Shown here: one piece after another, positions 481 to 17,780 of the stretch
Layout of the letters: each line of letters begins with the position of its first letter
How positions within the stretch are numbered: the first letter of the stretch is position 1
Assembly: GCA_964187785.1 (NCBI GenBank)
Contig: OZ076416.1
Location: 930,001-994,000, forward strand
Length of the DNA stretch: 64,000 bases
Origin: Amphiscolops sp. MND2022
Lineage: Eukaryota
Direction: 5' to 3'
The notes under the pieces: model-generated
Told to the model about the DNA's origin: nothing
The model's database searches: none
The model's input: the letters and a program-made list of their open reading frames with translations, nothing else
Program-made: the position numbers and the translations under genes

Positions 481-2062
481 TGTCGCAGACGGCCGCCTGC
501 GATGGTAACTGGTACACGGTCGCATATGGTTATTGAAGGGCCCTACCCGGGAAAATTCCACTAGATTGAGGAAATATCAGCAGTTGAGCCAAGAAGTCCA
601 AGAATTCCAAGGCAGACATAATTAAAACTTTTCCGATAAAACTGTTTTGTATTACTGGTTTGTGATATAACATGTAATTGCATACAGTTAGTTGCCATAT
701 TACTTGTTAGTTATATTTTAAAACATGTAAATATAATTAGATGTGCTATGAATTGGACACCAAAGCGTACAGGTAGAGGAAACGCGTTCAAAGTGTTCCC
801 TCTTCTGTCGCTGTGGACAAGCAGTCCAAATTAAATTCAACCAATCACATCTCAGCATTCAACTGAACACTCTAATACAGCGCTAATAATAGAGGACATT
901 ATGGCCACGCGCCGTTTTTTCTCAAAAATTGATATACTCGCTAAGGCGATTGGAAAATGAGTCCAATTTGACTGGTGCTTTCAAGATTGTAGTAATAGAC
1001 TTAATTTGAAAAATAGTGTTGCGTACAATTACAGTCTTACAAATAAAGGTGCTATATCTGATGCCCTCGTTTGGCTAAAAAGCCGTATTTGGCCAAAGTC
1101 CAATTTCTTCTATCTAAAGTTTATGCGAGTGTGATCAAAACATGTAATTATTGCATGAATGTTACATGCAGTGTTGCCTTCATAATCATAAAAGTGCAGT
1201 TATCCCTTAGGGACGTTAGTTGAAATAGATGAACGAAGCGGTGTAACGCCTTTGATGTGGCCAAAAGGTCATTACGTCATGTAACCCGTAAATAGGTGAT
1301 GCTTTTTTAGATTAGTATTTTACTATTTTTAGAACATGACAGTTATTTTTTCAATGATCATGCAATCTATCCTCTATATACCCGGAACTCTTGGACGGGG
1401 GGACATAATTTGATAATATATGCAGCCTATCAATTGATCTTGTTTGTTTGCAAGCCTAAAGATAATCAATTCTTACCTCTTGCAATAGTCTCTTATGCCT
1501 TCCACAAGGAAAGAAAAGGCGAAAGCTAGAAAGTCAAGGGAAATGGACATGATGTCTGACTTTGAAAATATGGATGTAATGATTGGGAATGGTAACACCA
1601 ATCCTATCGAACGCGAACTTTCAAACATGATTGGAAATGAAGTAAACAATTAAGGCATTGAGTCTAATCCCCAATCTTTGCGGTATGAGACTCATGAAAA
1701 TGAATTTGGACATTACGCTCATGAAAATGCAATTCCCAGACAGGATATGGTTCAAGAAACACTAGAAACTTTCACTAGCGAATTTAACATGTGACTTTCG
1801 CAAGAAATGGATTCAATGATGTCATTATTGCATAGTCAGATAAGCAGGGCGATTAGCACGCCGATAACCGAAAGAGTAATTCCAGAAACTCAAAATATAG
1901 TGAGCTCGATTTCATCCTCAGGGAACCGAGACACTGAGACCGGTTCGTCCCCTAATAATCAGAAAGACGCTGAAACGAACAATGGGTTCAGAAATAAAAT
2001 TACGAAAAAGGACTCACGGTCTACTGGCGACCTTAGAACACCTAGAGACAGTAGTCCTTACA
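481..2062 (+). repeat. 5' LTR of element A (1582 bp)
   Basis: TGTCGCAGAC...CCTTACA matches 16315-17760 apart from scattered substitutions and an indel at about 690-835. Confidence 0.95.
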
Positions 2063-3186
2063 TAGTGACAGTAGCTACCGACACCCAACGGCAAAGTCCT
2101 GAATTCCTGTCCGGCGAATCCACTCACACCCGAACCTTGAGAGACAAGAATCGAGCCATAATGCCTATCTGGACACTACTCTACCTGCCCCAGAGCCTGA
2201 GGCGCCACAAACACCCCATGACCCGTTAAACAGATTGGCTGACGTACTGGTCAATCTCCAGAACAAACCACAGACAATGACAATTAGACCAATTACAACC
2301 ACCTCCATGACATTTGATGGCAAAAGCGAAAAATTTGAACTCTTTGAGGACTTGTTCCATACAATGATAAAAATGCAACCAGTGACGACCGAGCAAATGA
2401 AAAAAAATCATTTTCATTCCTTGCTACGGAAAGGGGCACTGCAAACATTCAGGAACATAAACACCATCAACCGTCAAACACTTGAAGACGTTCTGGTCAT
2501 ATTCCGACGCAAATTTGTAAAACCAGAATTGCCAAGCAACAGCCAAACACAAGTGGCACTGACTCATCGTTGACCCTAATACGATGAAATTACCTGACCT
2601 TTTAGAGGAGCTGAACCAAGGTGTCGAGAAAGCCTTCGGTGAAAAGGCCAAAAGCATGATTGACAGCTTGCTCTATGCCAAATTACCACCAAAACTAAAG
2701 CGATCTGTCAACATGGCCCGTCTAGAGAATGGGACATATGAAGAAATTGTAGCTCATCTTGAAAGAGAGCTCGAACTCAATGCATTGGAGGAATCGAATG
2801 ACCTACCTCAGCGTCCACAAGTAGCCGCAGCTTGCTATCCACTGGCATTGACACCAACAAAGAAGCACAATGCGCTTACTGCAAGGCAAACGGCCATTTT
2901 TACAACAATTGTCCAAAGTTGAAAAAGAAAAAGGAATTAGAGGACAAGACTGGCAATACACCGCAGCGCCCAACATACCCACCGTGTGACACATGCGGAA
3001 GAAAACCATCCGACAGAACGATGCTGGCAAGGCGCTGCTGCACACCTACGACCCAAGAGGAATCGCAATGATGACAAAAATAACGATGACTCAAATGAGG
3101 ATGAAAAACCCAAGAAGACAAATAATAATGATGAAACATCCTCCTCAGGCCAATCCACTTCCAAAAAGGCCGAATCAGAAAATTGA
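1495..3186 (+). pseudogene. gag: Gag of element A (stops and frameshifts), two CCHC zinc knuckles, start codon inside the LTR
   Basis: ATG 1495 (MPSTRKEKAKARK) is in frame with track ORF 1807-2229. Capsid-like stretch TFDGKSEKFELFEDLF. Knuckles CAYCKANGHFYNNC and CDTCGRKNHPTERC. Confidence 0.9.
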
Positions 3187-3199
3187 TTTAGCCACGACT

Positions 3200-6100
3200 C
3201 CAAATACATGACTATATGTCAGTACGACAATATGTCATATCAGATCCTCCAATAATAAACTTCCGACAATATGTTAAAGACACCAATGGCATCCCGTCCG
3301 TTGTCTGGCAGCAACAGATGGAATAAGCCTACATCAAAAGTTACAAAGCAGTACATAATGATCGCCCAGACCGATACTATGACATGGACTACACTAAAAA
3401 CGTTGAGACCCCAATCCGCCCATTACCATTAATCGATGATTACAACCCTCAATACATCAACCCCGACTACGGAAAAGACCCGTATTGGGATGAAGAAGTA
3501 TACGATAAACAAAACATACAATTTAGACGCGACGAATATCCTCCAACGGATGACGAAGAAGACTCTGAGATACGGGACAACAAACTAACTCAAGCCCTCA
3601 TTGAACTTTGGCAAACAAACACCGAAGCAATGTTCTCAGAAATAGAAGAACCATACCATCAGGAGGACCCCCAGGGCCCTTCTAGCCTTTTGGATGAAAA
3701 AGCCTTCTTGCACTTTTTAGTTGAAAAGGAAGGAGAACCATCATACGTTCCCCTTTCAACAAACCTTGGACTCAAATTTGAGAGACGGATACTGTATTTC
3801 CCAATGGATTTTGGGGAGCTAACCTAAGACGGCCTAATAGACACTGGGACCCACTCCAGTGCCATACCAGAAGCAGATCTCCGGAAAATACGATTATTGG
3901 CGCCTCAATCCATAGTAAAGGAGAGACTTGCTCCATCTTTCCAAATAATGGTCGCAAATGGGGATTTAGAAACTCCGAAAAGTACCGTCGAACTAAAGTT
4001 TGAAGTCGGAGACATGGAGTTCTATGAAAATTTCATAGTAATGAAAAAATTGTCTAGTCCCATACTTGGACTGATGTTTCTGCAAAGAAACCACACAGTT
4101 CTGGACATGCGCCAAGGTATTTCAAACTTTCCCTATTTCTCAATGCAACTCAAAACGGCTGACCATAAAAACTCAAATGTACTGGAACCTATCCTCTACC
4201 CCGAGGATGTCACAATCTCGCCCAATGACCATGCAGTCATACCTATCAAATCTCAAATCTACGCAGAAAATGCAGTTACGGACATACTACAACCCAATGA
4301 CCTTCTGCATGAAGAAGGCGACATAACCTTTTGTGCCGCTATAGTCACACTACATGAAGGGACTATGAGGATACACGTCAACAATATCACCGATCAACCT
4401 TACAAACACAAGAAAGGGATGCATATGGCCAATTTCTCAGTAATGACTCCTGAGCAGAAGAAGTATGTCAGGCCAATAGACCCAGTGTCCGCCTGGCATT
4501 TACTCAATGAAAATGAAGAAGATGCAATTTACTACATTAGCAGCCTCCTTAAAGCTAACAGGAACAGCGACCAATACGAACAATATTGGTTTCCAACACC
4601 TGAAAATCCAGGGGACGAAACGACTCATACCCCAATACAGCAAAGAATCCTCAGAGAATTACGAAAATTGCAAGATTTAGAACAACTCAATCCGCATGAT
4701 GACGCAGAATCCCGCCGGAAACTCCTCAGCAATTTTGACTGGGAAGACTCAATGCTACAACAGCATGAGATTAGACAAATAGAAACTCTATCAGTAGAAT
4801 TCCATGGTATTTTCGCACGCCATAGATTTGACAATGGCGTCAACGAAGCATTTACAGTCTAATTGACACCAAAGGACGAATCACCTGCTTACAGTCAGAG
4901 CCTACCTACTCCGGTCAACCTCAAAGAGGACATATTGGTCGAACTGGCGCTACTCCACAAATATGGTAAGATAACGACATTACCATTCTCAAAGTACGCC
5001 AGTCCCATATTTGCGCAGAAAAAACCCAATGGAAAACGGAGACTGTTGGTGGATTCGAGAAAAATTAATATTCTGATCTCAGATGATTACGTCAAAAACA
5101 ACCACCCAGTCAGCACCTTGACGGATGCTGCGCAACACATTGCCGGCTATAAACTTTTTTGCAAATTCGACTGTTCACAAGCTTACCATTGCTTCCCCAT
5201 GGCGGACCAGAAATCCATTCAAATGCTAGGCTTTAACTTCGCCAGTAGGACATTTGCCTACAGGAGATAAGCTCAAGGACTCAGCCGAGCCCTATTGGCT
5301 TTCTCCAGTTTATGAGAGAATATCTGGATCGTGTTATGAAAGCAGACCAGTGCGCTCAATATGTAGACCATATTGGCGTTGCGGCAATAGACGCCAGACA
5401 ACTCATCGCCAACTTAAGAGCAACACTCCAATGCATCAGAGAAGCGGGATTGAAACTATCCATGCACAAGGCCACTTTGGGGGCACTGAAATCGACTTCC
5501 TTGGAAGAACAAATTCCCCTGAAGGGGTCAAACCTCAAAATAAAAGAATTACTAATTTCTTATAAAAAAACGAAACTTCTGAAATCCAAGAAGGCCTTAC
5601 AACGTTACCTTGGCTTCCTCAATTACTACAGGAAATACATACCGAGAAATTATTTCCATTCTTCCAACTCCTCAAAAAAGACGAAAAGGTCCTGGTGGCA
5701 ACAGAACTAGTAGAACAGTTCAATGAAATCAACAGAGACCTGGACAGGCGTAGTCAATTAGCACTGAAACAACCATTACCAAACAAACCATTGGTCCTTA
5801 TGACCGATGCTAGTTTTACGGCAGCCGGTTACGCCATACTGACCGAAGACGACCCAAACCAGAAATTCACTTCCGTCAAAAAGTTCTATGCGCCAATAGC
5901 ATATGGATCAAAAACTTTCAATCCTTCTCAGCCCAAAATGTCATTATATGCAAAGGAATTCCTAGCAATATATTACGCGTTCAAGGAGTTCGGACACATC
6001 TTCTGGGGAACGCCTAAACCAGTAATCATCCTCACGGATAGTAAATCGGTCACAAGGTTCTTCCAGACAAAGATAATACCACCGCCACTCTGGAACGCTT

Positions 6101-7103
6101 GTGATTTTGTGATCCATTTAAACGTCACTATAGCTCTTATTCCATGCAAAAATAACACAGCGGCGGATTACCTGTCTCGCATGGAAAAGAACCCTACGGA
6201 AAAATTAGTCCTGAAAATACGCGAGGACGTGGAAACACGACCAATTGAAGTTAATGTCCAATCGGCAGGAGTGTCCGAAGAAGAACAAGTCTTTTTCACT
6301 GAAGAAGACAATGAAACGGAAGAAAGATTTGGGAACGGAAAAAACAATCTCAAAAGGAACTCAAGGTCCCTGAGCCAATATTACATATTGATACAATTAC
6401 GGAAAAATCCAACAGGAGGAATATTCTGAGGAACTTCCTCAACAAGCTTTTCGGTACAATCATTACCTGCATAGATTTGACGGTCTAGTCTTGAAAGATG
6501 AAACTATAACACGACATTACTATGATGAAACTGGACAAGTTAAATATCACCAAATTCTACTGCCAAAACATTTTATGAGAGAACTATTGCAAGCAATACA
6601 CGGCACAGCACATCGACACCCAGGCTTTTCCAAAATGCTACAGGGAATACGACAACAATACTACTACCCAGGGATAGCAAAACATGTCAAAAAGTGGGTA
6701 GAAGGATGCGAGATATGTGCCAAGGACAAGCACGTCCCTAAAAACGCAATAACACCGGAACTCCTTAATTTGCCTGAATGGGACCTTGGACCAGAAGATG
6801 CCATGCAAATTGACTTGCTACCAAACTTACCTTGGAGACTTGCTAGTGGAAGATACCAAACAGTGATGACAGCGATTGACTTCTCTTCAAGATATTTATT
6901 TGCATACCCGCTAATTGAGGCAACTGCCTTAAATGTAGCGAAAGTGATAATTGATATCATGACAAAACATTCATACCTGCCAACAACCGTCATCACGGGC
7001 AAAGGGTCCGCGTTTACATCCACAATTTTAGCAGAAATTACAAAAATTTTATGCATAACACTTAGATGCGCCACAACTAAACACCCGAAGACCATGTGCA
7101 AAC
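3200..7103 (+). pseudogene. pol: Pol of element A, first tandem copy (PR, RT, RNase H, truncated INT)
   Basis: Protease LIDTG about 3835. RT LLVDSRKIN and QYVDHIG. RNase H LMTDASF, KEFLAI, ILTDS. INT HGTAHRH..CEIC and QIDLLP. The copy breaks off at TTKHPKT. Confidence 0.95.
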
Positions 7104-10100
7104 CATACCATCAGGAGGACCCCCAGGGCCCTTCTAGCCTTTTGGATGAAAGAGCCTTCTTGCACCTTTTAGTTGAAAAGGAAGGAGAACCATCATACGT
7201 TCCCCTTTCAACAAACCTTGGACTCAAATTTAAGAGACGGATGCTGTATGTATTTCCCAATGGATTTCAATTCCAATAGATCCCAATGGAGCTAACCTTA
7301 GACGGCCTAATAGACACTGGGACCCACTCCAGTGCCATACCAGAAGCAGATCTCCGGAAAATACGATTATTGGCGCCTCAATCCATAGTAAAGGAGAGAC
7401 TTGCTCCATCTTTCCAAATAATGGTCGCAAATGGGGATTTAGAAACTCCGAAAAGTACCGTCGAACTAAAGTTTGAAGTCGGAGACATGGAGTTCTATGA
7501 AAATTTCATAGTAATGGAAAAATTGTCTAGTCCCATACTTGGACTGATGTTTCTGCAAAGAAACCACACAGTCCTGGACATGCGCCAAGGTATTTCAAAC
7601 TTTCCCTATTTCTCAATGCAACTCAAAACGGCTGACCATAAATACTCAAATGTACTGGAACCTATCCTCTACCCCGAGGATGTCACAATCTCGCCCAATG
7701 ACCATGCAGTCATACCTATCCAATCTCAAATCTACGCAGAAAATGCAGTTACGGACATACTACAACCCAATGACCTTCTGCATAAAGAAGGTGACATAAC
7801 CTTTTGTGCCGCTATAGTCACACTACATGAAGGGACTATGAGGATTCACGTCAACAATATCACCGATCAACCCTACAAACACAAGAAAGTGTTGCAGTGA
7901 TGGCCAATTTCTCAGTAATGACTCCTGAGCAGATGAAGTATGTCAGGCCAATAGACCCAGTGTCCACCTGGCATTTACTCAATGAAAATGAAGAAGATGC
8001 AATTTACTACATTAGCAGCCTCCTTAAAGCTAACAGGAACAGCGACCAATACGAACAATATTGGTTTCCAACACCTGAAAATCCAGGAGACGAAACGACT
8101 CATACCCCAATTCAGCAAAGAATCCTCCGAGAATTACGAAACTTGCAAGATTTAGAACAACTCAATCCGCATGATGACGCAGAATCCCGCCGGAAATTCT
8201 TCAGCAATTTTAACTGGGAAGACTCAATGCTACAACAGCATGAGATCAGACAAATAGAAACTCTATTAGTAGAATTCCATGATGTTTTCGCACGCCATAG
8301 ATGACATTGGCGTCAACGAAAAAATTACAGTCAAATTGACCCCAAAGGACGAATCACCTGCTTACAGTCAGAGCCTACCTACTCCAGTCAACTTCAAAGA
8401 GGACATATTGGTCGAACTGGCGCTACTTCACAAATATGGTATTATAACGACATTACCATTCTCAAAGTACGCCAGTTCCATATTTGCGAAGAAAAAACTC
8501 AATGGAAAACTGAGACTGTTAGTGGATTTGAGAAAAAATAATAATCTGATTTCAGATGATTACGTCAATACCAACCACCCAGTCAGCACCTTGACGGATG
8601 CTGCGCAACACATGGCCGGCAAAAAACTTTTTTGCAAACTCGACTGTTCACAAGCTTACCATTGCTTCCCCATGGCGGACCAGAAGTCCATAGAAATGCT
8701 AGGCTTTAACTTCGCCAGTAGGACATTTACCTACAGGAGATTAGCTCAAGGACTCAGGTGAGCCCTATCAGCCTTCTCCAGTTTTATGAGAGAAAATCTG
8801 GATCGGGTTATAAAAGCCGACCAAAGCGCTCAATGTGTAGACGATATTGGCGTTGCGGCAATAGACGCCAAATAACTCATCGCCAACTTAAGAGCAACAT
8901 TCCACTGCATCAGAGAAGCGGGATTGAAACTATCCATGCATAAGTTCCACTTTGGGGCCACTGAAATTGACTTCCTTGGAAGAACAAGTACCCCTGAAGG
9001 GGTCAAACCCCAAAAGGAAAGAATTACTAAATTCTTGAAAAAAACGAAATTTCCGAAATCCAAGAAGGCCTTAAAACGTTACCTTGGCTTCCTCAATTAC
9101 TACAGGAATTACATACCGAGATTATCCGAAAAAATTGTTCCATTCTTCCAACTCCTCAAAAAATACGAAAAGGTCCTGGTGGCAACAGAACTAGTAGAAC
9201 AGTTCAATGAAACCAACAGAGACCTGGACAGGCGTAGTCAATTAGCACTGAAACAACCATTACCAAACAAACAATTGGTCCTTAGGACCGATGCGAGTTT
9301 TACGGCAGCCGGTTACGCCATACTGACCGAAGACGACCCAAACCAGAAATTCACTTCCGTCAAAAAGTCGTATGCGCCAATAGCATATGGATCAAAAACT
9401 TTCACTCCTTCTCAGCTCAAAATGTCAACATATGCAAAGGAATTACTAGCAATTCTTTACGCGTTCAAGGAGTTCGGACACATCTTCTGGGGAACACCTA
9501 AACCAGTAATCATCCTCACGGATAATAAATCGGTAACAAAGGTTCTTCCAGACAAAGATAATACCACCGCCACTCTGGAACGCTTGTGATTTTGTGATCC
9601 AATTCAACTTTACTATAGCTCACATTCCATGCAAAAATAACACAGCGGCGGATTACCTGTCCCGCATGGAAAATTACCCTACTGAAAAATTAGTCCTGAA
9701 AATACGCGAGGACGTGGAAACACGACCAATTGAAGTTAATGTCCAATCGGCAGGAGTGTCCGAAGAAGAACAAGTCTTTTTCATTGAAGAAGACAATGAA
9801 ACGGAAGAACAGATTTGGGAACGGAAAAAACAATCCCAAAAGGGACTCAAGGTCCCTGAGCCAATAATACATATTGATGCAATTACGGAAAACTCTGTGG
9901 AGGAAATCATCAATTTCACTCAGAAACTACGACGAACAAACCAAACATTACTAGAGCAGTCTAAAGATCAGACGCTACGACAATTGAAAGCAAAAATCCA
10001 ACAGGAGGAATATTCTGAGGAAATTCTTCAATAAGCTTTTCGGTACAAACATTACCTGCATAGATTTGACCGTCTAGTCCTGAAAGATGAAATTATAACA

Positions 10101-10683
10101 CGACAATACTATGATGAAACTGGACAAGTTAAATATCACCAATTTCTACTGCCAAAACATTTACTGAAAAAACTATTGCAAGCAATACACGGCACGGCAC
10201 ATCGACACCCAGGCATTTCCAAAATGCTACAGGGAATACGACAAAAATACTACTACCCAGGGATAGCAAAACATGTCAAAATGTGGGTAGAAGGATGCGA
10301 GATATGTGCCAAGGACAAGCACGTCCCTAAAAACGCAATAACACCGGAACTTCTTAATTTGCCTGAATGGGACCTTGGACCAGAAGATGCCATGCAAATT
10401 GACTTGCTACCAAACTTACCCGCTAGTGGAGGATACCAAACGGTGATGACAGCGATTGACTTCTTTTCAAGATATTTCTTTGCATACCCGCTAATTGAGG
10501 CAACTGCCACAAATGTAGCGAAAGTGATAATTGATATCATGACAAAACATTCATACCTGCGAACAACCGACATCACGGACAAAAGGTCCGCGTTTACCTC
10601 CAGAATTATAGCAGAAAATACAAAAATTTTGGGCATAACACTTAGATGCGCCACAACTAAACACCCGAAGACCATTGGCAAAC
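3652..10683 (+). repeat. About 3.45 kb tandem duplication inside pol of element A
   Basis: CCATACCATCAGGAGGACCCCCAGG at about 3651 and about 7103. ACACCCGAAGACCAT at 7081 and 10661. The junction shares AAC microhomology. Confidence 0.95.
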
Positions 10684-11599
10684 TAGAAAGGACGCATGCC
10701 TCACTTAAAACAAATTTAAAAATGGCTTCAGGGGAATATCGACGACAATGGTACAGATACCTGCCATTCGCTGTGCTCAACTATAATACTACATATCATT
10801 CTAGTATTGGATGCGAGCCAAGTAAAGTCTTTCATGGCCGAATTCCCTTAGATCATAAATTGGGAAACAATCCCAACAAAAATTTCTTGCCAACTACAGA
10901 AATTGAAGAAGACGTACAAAACAGGACACGAGTCTTCATAGATCAAACCAAATTGAATATCATGCAGTCCTATTTGAAATACAAAGACTACTATGACAGA
11001 AAAGCCAAAGCTGCTCCGCATAAAGAAAAGGATTACTGCTTTATATTACATCCTAAAGCTGACAGTCAGACATCAAAAATTCCATTTAGAGTATTCCAAT
11101 GGATTGGACCTTTCATCATTCAAAAAGTCTTAGCAAACGATAACTATGTCGTGCGTCGGGTTAATACAAATAAAACGCAAATACTACACCGGATTAGACT
11201 GAAAAAATTTGTACCTAATACGCCCTTACAGGACATTTTTTGGCTGGCGAAAAACTACAGCCCGACGAGGAGATAGTGAAACCGCAAGACGATTTGTATA
11301 CTATTTTATGGGAGGTAGATTTTGACTACGACTTGTTTGAAACGAGAAAAGATGATTGGCCGGACACAGCCACGCGTCTGCCGAACGACGCCGCAAGTGG
11401 CGGAGTGGACTATTACGTCACCGAAGTTGAACGCTGCAGCTCGGATGAAGATGAAAAACGCAGCGGTGAACAAGCGAATGCAAGTGACGTCAACGAGAAT
11501 CAAATAGAGCCGAGACCGGCCAACAGCCGAGACGCGACGTCCCCGCTAAATGAATCGCCTAGTGGTCAGAAAATGAAAATGACGTCATTAATGATTTAG
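7104..11599 (+). pseudogene. pol: Pol of element A, second tandem copy, through to complete integrase
   Basis: LIDTG, LLVDLRK, CVDDIG, RTDASF. INT HHCC, D-D-E (QIDLL, ITDKR, KLERTH) and GPF motif WIGPFII. Acidic C-terminal tail to 11599. Confidence 0.95.
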
Positions 11600-11753
11600 A
11601 CAACACGGAAATCGCTTCAAGCGAAATATATATATAAAACAGAAAGTAAGACTGTAAAACACATGACAAGCAACTCCAAAGTAACAACCAAACAAGGTAA
11701 AACAGAATTGAACAAAGTACAAGTTCATACAACAAAATGTACACTATGTACAT

Positions 11754-14368
11754 TTAAAGCTTAGAGGTACTTGGGTCAGACACTCCTGGGACTATTTCCT
11801 CCGTGGCTGATTGCGTTGTCCCGAAGGCAACTTTACGCTTCTGCTTTCCAGATTTCTTTCGCTGAATGCTACCTGTAGGGGAACTCGAACCGGAAGCAGA
11901 CCGGCTAGATGATGCTGATTTAGACTCATGAACAATAGACTGGTATTTTGCGTGGAGAGTCTTAAAAAAATGGTTCCTGCCTAAGGTGTCCACATGAGTC
12001 CAGGGACCTCCTGCCACATTTGCCGAATTGAACTGCTCCACCAGCTCTCGGAATTTAACGATTGAGTCCTCGTTGGTACACACGGTGATGGCATCAGGAA
12101 CTCGGGCTAAATAAGACTGAGAAGGCAAAAGAACGTCTACCAGCCTACACTTGAGACTCTGTGAGTCAACATCCTGGAAACGGATCGGAGGAAGCAGTGG
12201 GGTATCTTCCGTGAGACAAAAACAACTTAGCCGAAATAACTGATATAAATTAGGACAGCTCTTCAGCTCGGGTATTGAGGACAGTATCTCCCATGTGTCA
12301 GTAAAGCCACCAGGTGATTTCTGCAAACAGGAGTACACTTGTCGGAAATGACCCACAAATTCCATGTCACGGCAATCATCTTCAGAAGACCCTTTTAGCC
12401 AACCTCGGAGACTGAAACTTCGATATAATGCAGCAAAACAAAAGGAACCTTGGTCCAAGGGAAGAGTCAGTAACACACGGGGTCAAAACAAGCCGTCCCC
12501 CTCACTATGTCAGCATTCAAACCAAAGTGCCCGAGGAAAATTTCGAGAACGGTGACGATGTAGCTCCTAGCTCTGGCGACAAGTTTCTCCTTTGCATCCT
12601 CGACAAGTTTTGGCAAATTGGCAAATTGGGGATTGGTCCTTCCCTCTCCCCATTATCTCTTTCTACTTTGGCAGTAGCTGCTGCATCTAGGTCTTGCTTC
12701 AGTCGTAGTCTGGTAAGAAAGTTCCTGGTGGACAGCTGGCGGAGTTCAGCGGTGCGCAGCACTGGTAGTTGAGTCCAATCTGTGTCTTTGGGCAAATGCT
12801 TGGGAAGAAGGGAACGGTAGCACAACTTACGGACGAAATTGTTCAACTGCCCAAAATCTCGGTGCCCTACGAGGCTTCGTTCAAAACAGACGTTATCTAA
12901 ACAGAAGAATTCAATAACCTATCAGCGCGGCAACTATACACTGAGGTGAAGCCTAGTGCCCAGGAGGCTCTTTATCAAGTGCAGAAAATGGTAAAAGACA
13001 CTTACAATCATAGACAAGCCTTCCATAGAATTCCAATTTGATTGGGAAAAAGTCGTCGATGATGATTTGCCACTCCAGACTTTGAGGCTGAAAAGAAACC
13101 CTTCGGGTCACAAAATGCGAAAAAGATAGGATAATAGAGAGTTAGTTTACAATGAACAATTATGTAACCTTGTCTCTAACTCCTTGCATCTCATAGGTAG
13201 GTGCAATCTTGGTGATATGGTCAAAAAATGGTTGCCAGTTAGTAATGATCTCGGAACAGATGGACGGGATGGACCGGACCCCGAGGTCACAACTGGATAT
13301 TGCCTAGAAACAACAAATCTCTGGACCAACTTGTAAAGTGCAAACAAACAACAATCACGGTCAACAAAACTAACTTTAGCCAACTCTGGAGTACGGACAA
13401 TCCATGGCTCATCTAGGCTTCCTGAAAGATAGACCACCAAATATCTGAGCTGAGTGTAGATGTCGATGCGTCCGAACACACTCCCTTCTCGCTTGTGCAT
13501 AAGTTTGTGAAGGTACAAGACTTCATAGCCGAAAGGGTGTTCAATTCCTTTCTTCAAGAGGGTCGACGGCTGAACCGCCTGAAGTACTTCTGACGTGCAC
13601 CCGGACATGCACACTCTTTGAGGTGATGTTAAGAAGAAGGACATCAAGCGCGCGACAGCCAAGAGTTGGTTTCGAGAAGGATAAGAGGATGTGCTATGTC
13701 GACAAAGTTGAATTTTGACTAGCTGATCGGCTTTCCAGTACCGCAATGACACAATCTCCTGGGTTCCCTGCTGTTCGAACTCGAGAGCGTACAATCCCGT
13801 CTCATTTATGGACTGTGCCACATCATGTATCCCGCGTAAAAATACGTGATGGATTATAGCCTAAAATAGTAAGACTTGTGTGAAAATCAATAAATAGTCA
13901 CCCAACAGCCCAATCTCTTCCTCAACCAGACTTAGTCTCCTTACCGTAAAAGAAAATGAAAAGAATGAGATTTATACGTACTGTAACCATGGTCGGTCCC
14001 CAGTCTAGGTCACCGAACATGTCCTGGTGATTTGTGAAGTCGCCCATCTCAATCCACAGTCCTTCAAGGAGGGTATCTGACTCTGAGGCTTTAATTGGAG
14101 AAACTCCGTGTAGTTCAGGCTGGGAAGATTGCTCGGGTGCCGGAAGGAAAGAAATGTCCAAGCTATGATCATTCGCCGCAAGGGTACGCAAAGTTGAGTC
14201 AGCAAAGGCAGTTAAACTTTCTTCACTTTTGCCGCTGCTGGAAGACATGTTGGATGGCGGACGAAGTGTCAGATTATCTTCTTTGGTAAGAGTCAATTAT
14301 CTGTTGAGGACGTCATGATCCTTGTTCTGAGGGGGTGTTGTTTCATCAAGGCGCTCTTCTGACGACAT
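11754..14368 (-). pseudogene. Spliced antisense accessory gene of element A (5 coding exons, about 740 aa), hAT-transposase-like, lightly disrupted
   Basis: Exons 14368-13982, 13860-13375, 13303-13169, 13087-13006 and 12896-11754. GT-AG introns of 121, 71, 81 and 109 bp have matching phases (0,0,0,1). One stop at 14297-14299 and two frameshifts in the last exon. Confidence 0.85.
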
Positions 14369-15582
14369 TCCTGAAGGAGAGAAGAGATTTAGCGGATAAA
14401 CTTCTTAATTTTGAAATCCCATGTGCCGCTATGAAAACCTCTGGAAGTGAAAATTTAAATATGAAACACGTGAAAGATGTGTTTATTGGGACAGGAAGTG
14501 TGTGAACTGAAATAAACCCTGATCAAGTTTATTTAGTTCAAAATGGGAATAGAATTCACTCACCAATTATTGAGGATAAGCTCTGGAAAAGATATATCGA
14601 CACGAGTTGTTCAACGTTCAGCAGTGCAGAAGAAGGAGGACCTCGTAGTGACAAGGGCTGGATTGCAGAGACTGGGAGTCGTCGGGTCAAGGAATCCACA
14701 GATAATCTGGCAGGTTGATGGTGAGTGGACAAGAAGTCCCAAAGGAGTTATGTGAATATCGAAGCTTCAAATAAGTGCAGATGAATCTGACTTGAAGACT
14801 AAATGACGAATGTTACCGGAGACAACTATATGTAGAGTAATACAAATTAGGAAATAAATAAAAGAAGATTAATTTATAAAGAATTGAGAATGGAATTGGC
14901 GATGTGACAAGATGTCGAAATTGGAGTTCGTGGCGATACAGTTTGGTGTCAAATTTGTTGTTATTTACAATTCACGAAATTATGTGGATAAAGTCTGCCA
15001 GCGGTATCTACATCAATTCATTTATTTCGAAAACTTTGTTAATTTTGGGAGTTATTTAATGATTTTATCATCATTTTATTCAGGTTTCAAGGTCATTTTG
15101 TATTATTCCTTATATGGATTTACGACCTTGGGAAGCCATTTTAACTTGGTCGAAATTTTGCTGCATTCCTATTGGTTGATCTGATTGATGGTGGACGGCG
15201 TGGCCGATTGCCATATCTTCACCTACTTGAAACTCTCAAGTACCTGATGAGTGGTAATAAACACTTGAGGTAACACTCCTAACTTGAGAGTGCTAGCATA
15301 ACTGATGATGATCAACAAAGTAATTGTCGGCAGATATAAAGCGACTTAGCGGCTTGATGAAAGGTTTTGAGAAGAGAAATTTTGTTATTGAAAACTTACC
15401 AGACGGGAAACGAAGCTGAAAACCCGGGAAAAGAAAACCCGTGATATGGTGAGAATCCCGCGAGGCGATGAGGAGAAGGATCGCGATTCATACGATTTCA
15501 ACCGCCAAAATCAGCTGCCTCCGAACCTTAAATACTTGAGTTTCTTTTCAAAAATTGCCAAAAAATAATAAAAGCTAGAATC

Positions 15583-16322
15583 ATGTCTGACTTTTCTGAA
15601 ACATTCCCTATGGACTTCCTGGGCGCTGCTCAATCTGAGGGAGCCCTGCAATAATATACATTTCAAGCGATGAAGATGAGAGAATGGATTCCATCGACGG
15701 TGACTCAGTAGACGACTTCTATGTCTCATCTGAAGAAGAAACGCTGGATATCGAGATTATGGCGAGATGCATAGAGACACAGCTGACCGAACCCATTACT
15801 AATCCCAGCGCCGAAACACCAGGTAATCAAGCTAGGTGCGGGACGCCTAAGCCAGATTTGCCGCCCTTCCCTACATTCACACAACTGTTTTTCAACCTGG
15901 GTATGGGCAATGGGCCTATCGGACGGGATGCCCGAATTAGACCCAATCATCCCATTAATATTTGTAGAGATCTACGACCTAATATTGATATCCCAATGTC
16001 GCCACCGCCAGAAGATAGAGGACCATCCTACGAACTAGATATACCGAGTTGCTCTCATCCGACAAGCTCTACTTCAGTTGAGTCTGTGGCAAATCACTTC
16101 AATGAAATTTCAGTGTCTGGACACGCTGGCCTGTTGGGCTGTTCAGACTGCGTGGTTTGTGGGAAGTCAGTTCAACAAATACAAGATGAAGCAGTCAATG
16201 ACTATCTCGACAAAACTGTTGTGCCAGGTGAGACGTTAGCTGAAACCGAGAGAAGAAAGAGAGCTTTCCTGGACGGAATGGCTGCTGGCACGTTTTTACT
16301 CATGTCAGGGGAAGTGTCGTAG
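15583..16322 (+). CDS. Short acidic, Pro-rich accessory ORF of element A ending inside the 3' LTR
   Basis: Track ORF 15684-16322 (212 aa). Probable true start is ATG 15583, with one frameshift near 15640. Contains IIYISSDEDE and CSDCVVCGK. Runs through the PPT and stops 8 nt into the LTR. Confidence 0.65.
16306..16314 (+). promoter_or_regulatory. Polypurine tract of element A
   Basis: CAGGGGAAG directly abuts the TG of the 3' LTR. Confidence 0.8.
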
Positions 16323-17760
16323 GCGGCCGTCTGCGATGGTAACTGGTACACGGTCACATATGGTTATTGCAGGGCCCTACCCGGAAAAATTCCACTAGAT
16401 TGAGGAAATACCAGCAGTTGAGCCAACAAGTCCAAGAAGTCCAAGGCAGACATAATTGAAACTTTTACGATAAAACTGTTTTGTATTACTGGTTTGTGTT
16501 ATAACATGTAATTGCATACAGTTCAACCAATCACATGTGATTCAACCAATCACATCTCAGCATTCAACTGAACACTCTAATACAGCGCTACTATTAGAGG
16601 ACACTATGGCCACGCGCCGTTTTTTCTCAAACATTGATATACTCGCTAAGGCGATGGGAAAATGAGTCCAATTTGACTGGTGCTTTCATGATTGTAGTAA
16701 TAAACTTAATTTGAAGAATAGTGTTGCGTACAATTACATTCTTAAAAATAAAGGTGCTATATTTGATGCCCTCGTTCGGCTCAAAAGCCGTATTTGGCCA
16801 AATTCCAATTTCTCCTGTCTAAAGTATATGCGAGTGTGATCAAAACATGTAATTATTGCATGAATGTTACACGCAGTGTTGCCTTCATAATCATAAAAGT
16901 GCAGTTGTCCCTTAGGGACGTTAGTTGAAATAGTGAACGAGGCGGTGTAACGCATTTGATATGGCCAATAGGTCATTACGTCATGTAACCCGTAAATAGG
17001 TGATGCTATTTTTAGATTAATATTTTACTATTTTTAGAACATGACAGTTATTTTTTCGATAGTCATGCAATCTATCCTATATATACCCGGGTCTCTTGGA
17101 CCGGGGGACACAATTTGATAATATATGCAGCCTATCAATTGATCTTGTTTTGTTTAAAGATAATCAATTCTTACCTCTTGCAATAGTCTCTGATGCCTTC
17201 CACAAGGAAACAAAAGGCGAAAGCTAGAAAGTCAAGGGAAATGGATATGATGTCTGATTTTGAAAATATGGATGTAATGATTGGGAATGAAAACACCAAT
17301 CCTATCGAACGCGAACTTTCAAACATGATTGGAAATGAAGTAAACAATCAAGGCATTGAGTCCAATCCCCAATCTTTGCAGTATGAGACTCAAGAAAATG
17401 AATTTGGACATTACGCTCATGAAAATGCAATTCCCAGACAGGATAAGGTTCGAGAAACACTAGAAACTTTCACTAGCGATTTTAACATGAGACTTTTGCA
17501 AATAATGGATTCAATGATGTCATTAATGCATATTCAGATAAACAGGGCGTTTAGCACGGCCATAACCGAAAGATTAAATCCAGAAATTCAAAATATAGTG
17601 AGTTCGATTTCATCCTCAGGGAACCGAGACACTGACACCGGTTCGTCCCTTAATAGTCAGGAAGACGCTGAAACGAACAATGGGTTTAGAAATAAAGTTA
17701 CGAAAAAGGACTCACGGTCTACTGGCGACCTTAGAACACCTAGAGACAGTAGTACTTACA
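16315..17760 (+). repeat. 3' LTR of element A (1446 bp)
   Basis: TGTCGTAGGC...ACTTACA, followed by TSD TCGTT. Confidence 0.95.
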
Positions 17761-17780
17761 TCGTTAGTATTGAAACTTGA
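17193..17780 (+). CDS. Open copy of the Gag N-terminus in the 3' LTR, reading 20 nt into the flank
   Basis: 195-aa ORF MPSTRKQKAKARK..., the LTR duplicate of 1495-2062. Confidence 0.7.
   Translation: MPSTRKQKAKARKSREMDMMSDFENMDVMIGNENTNPIERELSNMIGNEVNNQGIESNPQSLQYETQENEFGHYAHENAIPRQDKVRETLETFTSDFNMRLLQIMDSMMSLMHIQINRAFSTAITERLNPEIQNIVSSISSSGNRDTDTGSSLNSQEDAETNNGFRNKVTKKDSRSTGDLRTPRDSSTYIVSIET

Follow-up and report, generated by a model that had tools for sequence, protein, structure and literature searches.

Architecture of the locus

The 64,000-nucleotide (nt) stretch of the Amphiscolops sp. MND2022 genome analysed here (assembly GCA_964187785.1, contig OZ076416.1, positions 930,001 to 994,000 of the forward strand) is referred to below as the window, and positions are given in its coordinates unless a locus is named. 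It contains a Ty3/Gypsy long terminal repeat (LTR) retrotransposon on the plus strand at 481-17760, with a predicted gene of five exons and four GT-AG introns lying on the minus strand (11754-14422) between pol and the 3′ LTR. The 5′ LTR (481-2062, TG...CA) is 93.7-94.3% identical to the 3′ LTR (16315-17760, TG..CA), with the target-site duplication TCGTT found directly before the TG of the former (476-480) and directly after the CA of the latter (17761-17765). Between them, a decayed plus-strand gag-pol region (2063-11599) retains Pfam matches to gag-asp_proteas, RVT_1, RT_RNaseH, Integrase_H2C2, rve, and Integrase_p58_C, the pol domains following the order protease, reverse transcriptase (RT), RNase H, and integrase in fragmented open reading frames (ORFs). 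The window element is an old, dead copy.

The original prediction held that minus-strand ORF fragments in this region join into one reading frame through four short introns, and all four donors and acceptors were verified, with phases (0, 0, 0, and 1) that agree between donor and acceptor. Read along the minus strand, a remnant of exon 1 (13982-14422) is followed by intron 1 (13861-13981, phase 0; ACA/GTACGT at 13981 and TTTTAG/ at 13861, the slash marking the junction), exon 2 (13375-13860, 486 nt), intron 2 (13304-13374, phase 0; AAA/GTTAGT at 13374 and TTCTAG/ at 13304), exon 3 (13169-13303, 135 nt), intron 3 (13088-13168, phase 0; AAG/GTTACA at 13168 and TTTCAG/ at 13088), exon 4 (13006-13087, 82 nt), intron 4 (12897-13005, phase 1; GATT/GTAAGT at 13005 and GTTTAG/ at 12897), and exon 5 (11754-12896), which ends in the stop codon TAA at 11756-11754. 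Two open frames had been said to begin at their acceptor AG, and exons 2 and 3 do open exactly there, at 13860 and 13303.

Whilst the introns and their phases stand, the single continuous frame does not, as exon 5 of the window copy is broken by two frame changes, one at an 8-nt tandem repeat (12629-12614) and one near 12483-12476, and additionally lacks 15 nt near 12857. Coding had also been taken to start at the ATG at 14373-14371, however an in-frame TAA at 14299-14297 closes the frame opened by this codon, and the start codon conserved across lineages (MDxxxGS...) corresponds to a remnant at 14422-14420, 49 nt upstream. Furthermore, ~1.36 kb of exon 1, including a zinc finger, is gone at 14069/14068, and is still present in the nearest relatives of the window copy (C9, C13, and C7). 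The window's own antisense gene is a pseudogene.

Conservation of the gene across the clade

The 1.07-Gb source genome contains at least 56 matches to the antisense gene at 63-90% identity, from 198 first-look candidates. Among 29 other loci that were fetched, 19 show the same exon order, convergent with integrase and placed between pol and the 3′ LTR, with the remaining 10 being truncated, rearranged, or provided with too little flank; the gene-bearing loci span at least six subfamilies. The gene is thus not limited to the one insertion in which it was first noticed, being present additionally in three distant lineages and in a second sample, and the proposal that it moved with the element agrees with its constant place and orientation across all of these.

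Three young elements (C1, C5, and C2) of 15.9 kb, with LTRs 99.2-99.5% identical, display the undamaged arrangement. Their sense strand carries an open gag, an intact pol of 1,700-1,705 amino acids (aa), and a small third ORF (ORF3) of 295 aa, and their antisense strand carries open frames of 637-638, 163, and 397 codons along with two short exons, all introns and open exons being kept. The model of the intact gene comprises exons of 589, 162, 45, 27 codons plus one base, and ~386 codons, giving a predicted protein of ~1,209 aa, with the stop codons of the convergent antisense gene and pol ~230 nt apart. Comparison of these sequences confirms that a clade of ~16-kb Gypsy elements carries a conserved antisense gene with a predicted structure of five exons. 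As a separate observation on the young copies, their gag frame (e.g. 577-612 aa) starts inside the 5′ LTR, so that each LTR carries its first part.

The arrangement extends to deeply diverged relatives. When 1.84 billion representative sequences were scanned by HMMER with exon 5 as the query, 469 proteins were returned, all of at most 420 aa, which are ORF-level calls of the last exon; the 20 database clusters sampled consisted entirely of ORF calls from ENA assemblies. In the contigs behind several of these matches (27-48% identity), a large ORF for exon 1, another for exon 2, and exon 5 face, in convergent orientation, an ORF for RT, RNase H, and integrase together with a gag. One sample, ERZ25074608, belongs to the same species as the window (100% identity to G000:C6), and its lineages therefore represent deep lineages within one genome. 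Three deeply diverged lineages of the source genome hold the gene at the same position, with lineages of only 25-35% protein identity keeping both layout and splice sites. In a second sample, ERZ1742291, two contigs have best DNA matches to the source genome of only 67-80% over short blocks, and show the same layout, with an opposite-strand pol matching RT_RNaseH, Integrase_H2C2, rve, and Integrase_p58_C. At 33-39% protein identity, all four introns lie in these contigs at the same positions and phases, bounded by GT..AG. ERZ1742291 is probably a second species on the basis of this divergence, which would make the arrangement old. Neighbouring genes on related contigs include Gal-3-O-sulfotransferase, Sulfotransfer_2, and kelch genes, and these, with the short introns, are consistent with an animal.

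Conservation and loss of the introns

Comparison of 25 copies from at least six subfamilies shows that 194 of 200 splice dinucleotides (eight per copy) are intact, many more than chance would give, the exceptions belonging to decayed copies, and that each acceptor is preceded by a polypyrimidine tract. In undecayed copies, exons 2, 3, and 4 do not depart from 486, 135, and 82 nt, with exon 4 measuring 82 nt in eight of 11 representative copies, including all the undecayed ones, and intron lengths vary (121-132, 69-75, 77-93, and 99-115 nt for introns 1 to 4). Pairs from different subfamilies share 63-73% identity in the exons, mostly with 0-25 gaps, and 41-53% in the introns, with 22-57 gaps; in the comparison of loci L014 and L011, no gap occurs over 982 exon positions and 50 gaps occur over 368 intron positions. 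Both the conserved GT/AG sites and the lower intron identity that would be expected of a spliced gene are therefore found. Within a subfamily, exons and introns are equally similar, reflecting decay after insertion.

In the young copies that were read, stop codons follow the donors after exon 1 and exon 2. Two lineages (P0251, 808 aa, and L051:2109-3386) have an intron 1 that stays open in frame, and ORF callers read through it, with the resulting 'proteins' being chimeras that include the translated polypyrimidine tract and acceptor (e.g. ...LFQ/). Three further calls, P0332, P0336, and P0339 (230-236 aa), are long enough to be candidates for reading through intron 2. Such read-through ORFs constitute an annotation trap.

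One lineage, represented by L050, lacks intron 3, with exons 3 and 4 fused in frame (...GVKSK/PQSLEW...) exactly at the predicted junction. Scored copies with the fused form number at least 40 and belong to families of 96-99% and of 78-88% identity, and the form thus originated in an active ancestor and spread thereafter. Loss of the intron is more parsimonious than gain, since the exons of L050 are closer to those of window-type families (52% and 47% identity) than are the exons of the other lineages bearing intron 3 (32-36%). Classically, an intron lost seamlessly is the mark left by the reverse transcription of a spliced mRNA and its recombination back into the gene, and we infer such an event, involving a spliced antisense mRNA, for L050. 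Four sequencing runs that behave like DNA, with high word depth and contigs reaching 163 kb, showed no joint lacking any of the four introns when their contigs were aligned to a young copy. At a different place, contigs of three DNA runs join position 1291 of L045 to position 3955, skipping 2,663 nt from immediately after the start codon into exon 4, a joint that looks like a deletion-derivative subfamily and not a splice. From the comparison of copies, we infer that the four introns are spliced out in vivo.

Selection and the promoter-like block

The ratio of nonsynonymous to synonymous substitution (dN/dS) was computed on ungapped exons in the correct frame. Between subfamilies dN is 0.17-0.32 and dS is saturated, and sub-lineages compared with one another give dN/dS values of 0.10-0.17 (exons 1-3) and 0.2-0.45 (exon 5), in line with the expectation of a ratio below 1 for coding exons. 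Near-identical copies give a ratio of ~1, the value to be expected where selection operates solely from one transposition event to the next. Of 14 young copies, 12 have an exon 5 that is uninterrupted over its 383 codons. As judged from these substitution patterns, the predicted antisense protein is under purifying selection along element lineages.

Three motifs, CTTGATCAGGG, ACTTCCTG, and the palindromic ETS-type ACTTCCGGAAGATTT, are conserved in intact lineages within 160 nt upstream of the start codon, forming a promoter-like block that corresponds to 14423-14582 on the minus strand of the window, where it is partly decayed, the last motif, ACTTCCGGAAGATTT, being affected. The motifs persist where protein identity between lineages is as low as ~30%, and also occur in the second sample, for which the block (query positions 4-136) is among the best DNA matches to the source genome. 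It is internal to the element, ~1.9 kb from the LTR and directly upstream of the start codon, and the ACTTCCGGAAG block is the candidate transcription start region of the antisense gene. The antisense gene and ORF3 are divergent, with a spacer of ~1 kb between them, and since the block faces away from the sense ORF3, it may be speculated that the spacer acts in both directions.

Structure of the predicted protein

The product of intact exon 1 consists of a long low-complexity N-terminus, an invariant C-x2-C-x16-H-x5-H finger, and a highly conserved stretch. Pfam searches of the finger returned weak C2H2 matches only, and none to zf-BED, with the language-model neighbours of exon 1 being zf-BED (0.84-0.85) and FAM200/ZBED5 clusters, a result that serves as a lead only. 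Searches of the ESM Atlas returned unnamed clusters only.

Two models were built, one of exon 5 alone and one of the natural read-through ORF P0251, which runs from the finger across the end of exon 1 and intron 1 through exon 2. The AlphaFold model of exon 5, obtained with a 40-sequence alignment, is all-alpha, with a predicted local distance difference test (pLDDT) score of 78, exceeding 90 for residues 10-230. Its neighbours in AFDB carry the names HAT C-terminal dimerisation domain, ZNF862-like, DUF659, and Transposase, with expectation (E) values of 8.6e-6 to ~0.1 and template modelling (TM) scores of 0.2-0.6; the matches named for HAT C-terminal dimerisation are fold-level only (E 7e-3 to 0.13), and the corresponding Pfam domain (PF05699) was not matched, even at E = 1. 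Against the PDB, the longest alignment of this model is to residues 369-609 of the Hermes transposase (Z 4.9 over 180 residues), which is not above noise.

In the P0251 model (pLDDT 64), exon 2 is predicted to form three antiparallel strands and a helix, equivalent to strands 1-3 and helix 1 of an RNase H-like fold, and matches retroviral integrase cores (Z 6.4-6.5), other RNase H-like folds, and residues 136-264 of Hermes (Z 5.1). The AFDB neighbours of this N-terminal model are named ZBED4, HAT transposon superfamily, BED-type, and DUF659 (E 4e-4 to 2e-3). The catalytic DDE triad could not be placed, with no conserved acidic residue in the predicted first strand of this pLDDT 64 model; exon 2 has a single invariant acidic residue, placed in the helix that precedes this strand. 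No credible terminal inverted repeats were found around the gene, either in the window or in a young copy. The two modelled halves point weakly, and collinearly, to the architecture of a hAT transposase, by lines that are each weak. Should the protein descend from a hAT transposase, it would most likely be a derivative that binds DNA without catalytic activity.

Other features of the element

The pol region of the window element contains a tandem duplication of ~3.5 kb (3649-7103 versus 7101-10683). A duplication of similar length occurs at L034/L040 (G000:C13:38716000-38735999; 5801-9438 and 9442-13009), a copy only 79% identical to that of the window, with the two halves ~94% identical to each other in both cases. 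These duplications either originated independently, for instance by template switching, or represent one old duplication that has been homogenised.

ORF3 lies beside the 3′ LTR on the sense strand (15684-16322; L031:5746-6630, minus strand), is 81-82% identical between subfamilies, and matched no Pfam family. The purine run CAGGGGAAG abuts the 5′ side of the 3′ LTR, and is a candidate polypurine tract. At the opposite end of the antisense gene, a palindrome, AAATGTACA..TGTACATTT, overlaps the stop codon (11735-11757; L045:5251-5290), recurring in the young C1 copy and the L050 lineage and, in weaker form, in L047; either transcript could fold into a hairpin there. Where the pol frame ends, a 120-nt block (11500-11620) shows 81-95% identity among copies with an antisense gene only ~65% identical, holds the perfect palindrome ATGACGTCAT, which resembles a cAMP response element (CRE), and likely lies inside the 3′ untranslated region of the antisense transcript.

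Discussion

The evidence presented here very probably describes a Gypsy clade with a genuine, spliced antisense accessory gene encoding a hAT-like protein, of which the window element is a dead copy. The ETS-like internal promoter block, lying no more than ~130 nt from the start codon, would drive an antisense transcript, from which the spliceosome would remove four introns, a step suggested by their conservation and by the precise loss of one of them. The resulting mRNA would encode four parts, for which the models give moderate support: a long disordered N-terminus, an invariant CCHH (BED-like) finger, a core of RNase H-like fold, and an insertion/C-terminal domain that is all-alpha. Because the introns read CT..AC on the sense strand, they would not be spliced from the genomic RNA, and would be copied into each new insertion. 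The original explanation for the persistence of the introns, that they are antisense to the genomic RNA, fits the retention of all of them in young copies. The protein would be expected to serve the element, since it appears to be under purifying selection along element lineages, and may do so as a nuclear regulator or targeting factor that binds DNA, and not as an active transposase, a preference that we hold at about an even chance. The gene likely originated from an ancient hAT transposon that inserted in reverse orientation into a Gypsy ancestor, and that lost its ends whilst its gene was kept.

In its fullest form, to which we assign somewhat better than an even chance, this account holds that a clade present in at least two species has kept a reverse-oriented hAT gene with its introns and its own promoter, making the element ambisense, spliced, and retrovirus-like, and that the loss in L050 records the copying of a spliced antisense mRNA by RT and its return to the element by recombination. 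Several points weigh against the account of the antisense gene as a whole. Pfam searches of every exon piece and of 87 aligned homologues gave nothing significant, including for Dimer_Tnp_hAT and zf-BED; a profile search of PDB sequences and a Foldseek search of the PDB with the exon 5 model likewise returned nothing. The Hermes matches, at Z ~5, are within the noise for helical models, the N-terminal model reaches a mean pLDDT of only 64, and the function of the protein is putative throughout. The case for splicing is comparative, consisting of conservation among genomic copies and of the precise loss of an intron. A shared poly(A) signal for the antisense gene was looked for and none was seen, and spread outside the source species is represented by one further sample, ERZ1742291.

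The protein could alternatively be the product of a real spliced antisense gene that is not derived from hAT, being instead a captured host gene or a lineage-specific protein that combines a zinc finger with a common RNase H-like/helical layout. We regard this as possible though rather unlikely. The failure of any Pfam family to match the pieces or their homologues would be expected of such a protein, as would the absence of a conserved acidic residue from the predicted first strand, AFDB matches with TM-scores mostly of 0.2-0.6, and Hermes scores (Z 4.9-5.1) no better than those of many unrelated helical or RNase H-like chains. However, both independently modelled halves retrieve clusters of hAT type (BED, ZBED4, DUF659, HAT C-terminal dimerisation, and ZNF862-like), and are collinear on Hermes, with residues 136-264 followed by 369-609. 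The order of finger, RNase H-like, and all-alpha domains is furthermore that of hAT transposases, and the zf-BED and FAM200/ZBED5 neighbours of exon 1 offer a lead in the same direction.

It is highly improbable that the region consists of separate small ORFs, or of a decaying relic, with coincidental GT..AG pairs and no splicing. In some lineages introns 1 or 2 have no in-frame stop and ORF callers run straight across them, which would be compatible with this, but 97% of splice dinucleotides are kept where intron interiors are only 41-53% identical, phases are conserved across species, stop codons follow the donors of exon 1 and exon 2 in the young copies read, and intron 3 has been precisely removed in one lineage to leave the predicted junction. 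Slighter still is the likelihood of a chance insertion of an independent DNA transposon or gene into one or a few Gypsy copies; nested insertions are common, and the window copy is old and rearranged by duplication and deletion, but position, orientation, and exon structure are the same in every subfamily and in deep lineages, young copies have both the gene and pol undamaged, the gene has no credible terminal inverted repeats on its flanks, and purifying selection has acted along the lineages of the element.

A spliced antisense accessory gene in a Gypsy clade, as favoured here, invites comparison with the antisense ORFs (aORF-3R) found between pol and the 3′ LTR of plant Tat-lineage Gypsy elements (PMC7264820, PMC4408406). 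Examples include gene23 of maize Grande, rice RIRE2, Silene Retand, and other Tat-lineage elements, all of them single ORFs, with some products being nuclear (PMC7264820) and some carrying PMD or Transposase_28 domains (PMC4408406). The likeness to these plant ORFs that was originally proposed is borne out in position and strand, in presence in most copies of the family, and in age within the lineage. The gene described here differs in its five exons and conserved introns, its own promoter-like block, and its predicted ~1,200-aa zinc-finger hAT-like protein, with no Pfam match to PMD or Transposase_28 in any piece or in the 87 aligned members. A 2020 review of the plant aORFs does not contain the word 'intron', and calls for a search for antisense and spliced transcripts (PMC7264820).

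A closer parallel in expression may be HBZ of human T-cell leukaemia virus type 1 (HTLV-1), a minus-strand gene with a spliced antisense mRNA that encodes a regulator, its transcript starting in the 3′ LTR and having one intron, and its product being a small bZIP factor (PMC1459196, PMC10186651). Both are protein genes on the minus strand of a reverse-transcribing element, the present one being predicted to be spliced as well. In contrast to HBZ, the present gene has an internal promoter-like block ~1.9 kb from the LTR, four putative introns, and a large unrelated product, and belongs to a Gypsy element without a recognised env. The shielding of introns from loss by reverse orientation is established for retroviral vectors and for HTLV-1 HBZ, and the logic of antisense intron protection is not new.

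Among DNA transposons, the predicted protein resembles hAT transposases and their domesticated derivatives without catalytic activity, of the ZBED, ZNF862, FAM200, and DAYSLEEPER type in its order of finger, RNase H-like, and all-alpha parts, in the names of its AFDB neighbours, and in its collinearity with Hermes, and differs from them in having no Pfam hAT domain, no placed DDE triad, and no inverted repeats, and in being carried inside an LTR retrotransposon, neither moving as a DNA transposon nor being fixed as a host gene. The Vesta, Juno, and TelKA elements of bdelloid rotifers are animal LTR elements with genes beyond gag and pol, and the paper describing them does not use the word 'intron' and uses 'antisense' once, of small RNAs, and so shows no sign of ORFs that are antisense or bear introns (PMC5408684). 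Their env, DEDDy, GDSL, CC, and TM domains are unrelated to the gene described here. Within the limited library searched, the literature contained no multi-exon antisense gene in a non-plant LTR retrotransposon, and no hAT-like gene carried by one.

The usual picture of an LTR retrotransposon is of a gag-pol unit that has to be free of introns, as its genome passes through a spliced RNA stage. The elements of this clade would demonstrate that a large multi-exon gene can be carried, selected, and diversified inside LTR elements by lying on the other strand, a natural counterpart to both the reverse-orientation vector trick and HTLV-1 HBZ. They would also extend antisense accessory genes beyond plants, and may represent the recruitment by a retrotransposon of a DNA-binding protein derived from a DNA transposase. 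Genome annotators are prone to call such exons host genes or to mask them. Finally, the lineage that has lost intron 3 may provide a way to study the copying of non-genomic RNAs by the RT of the element.

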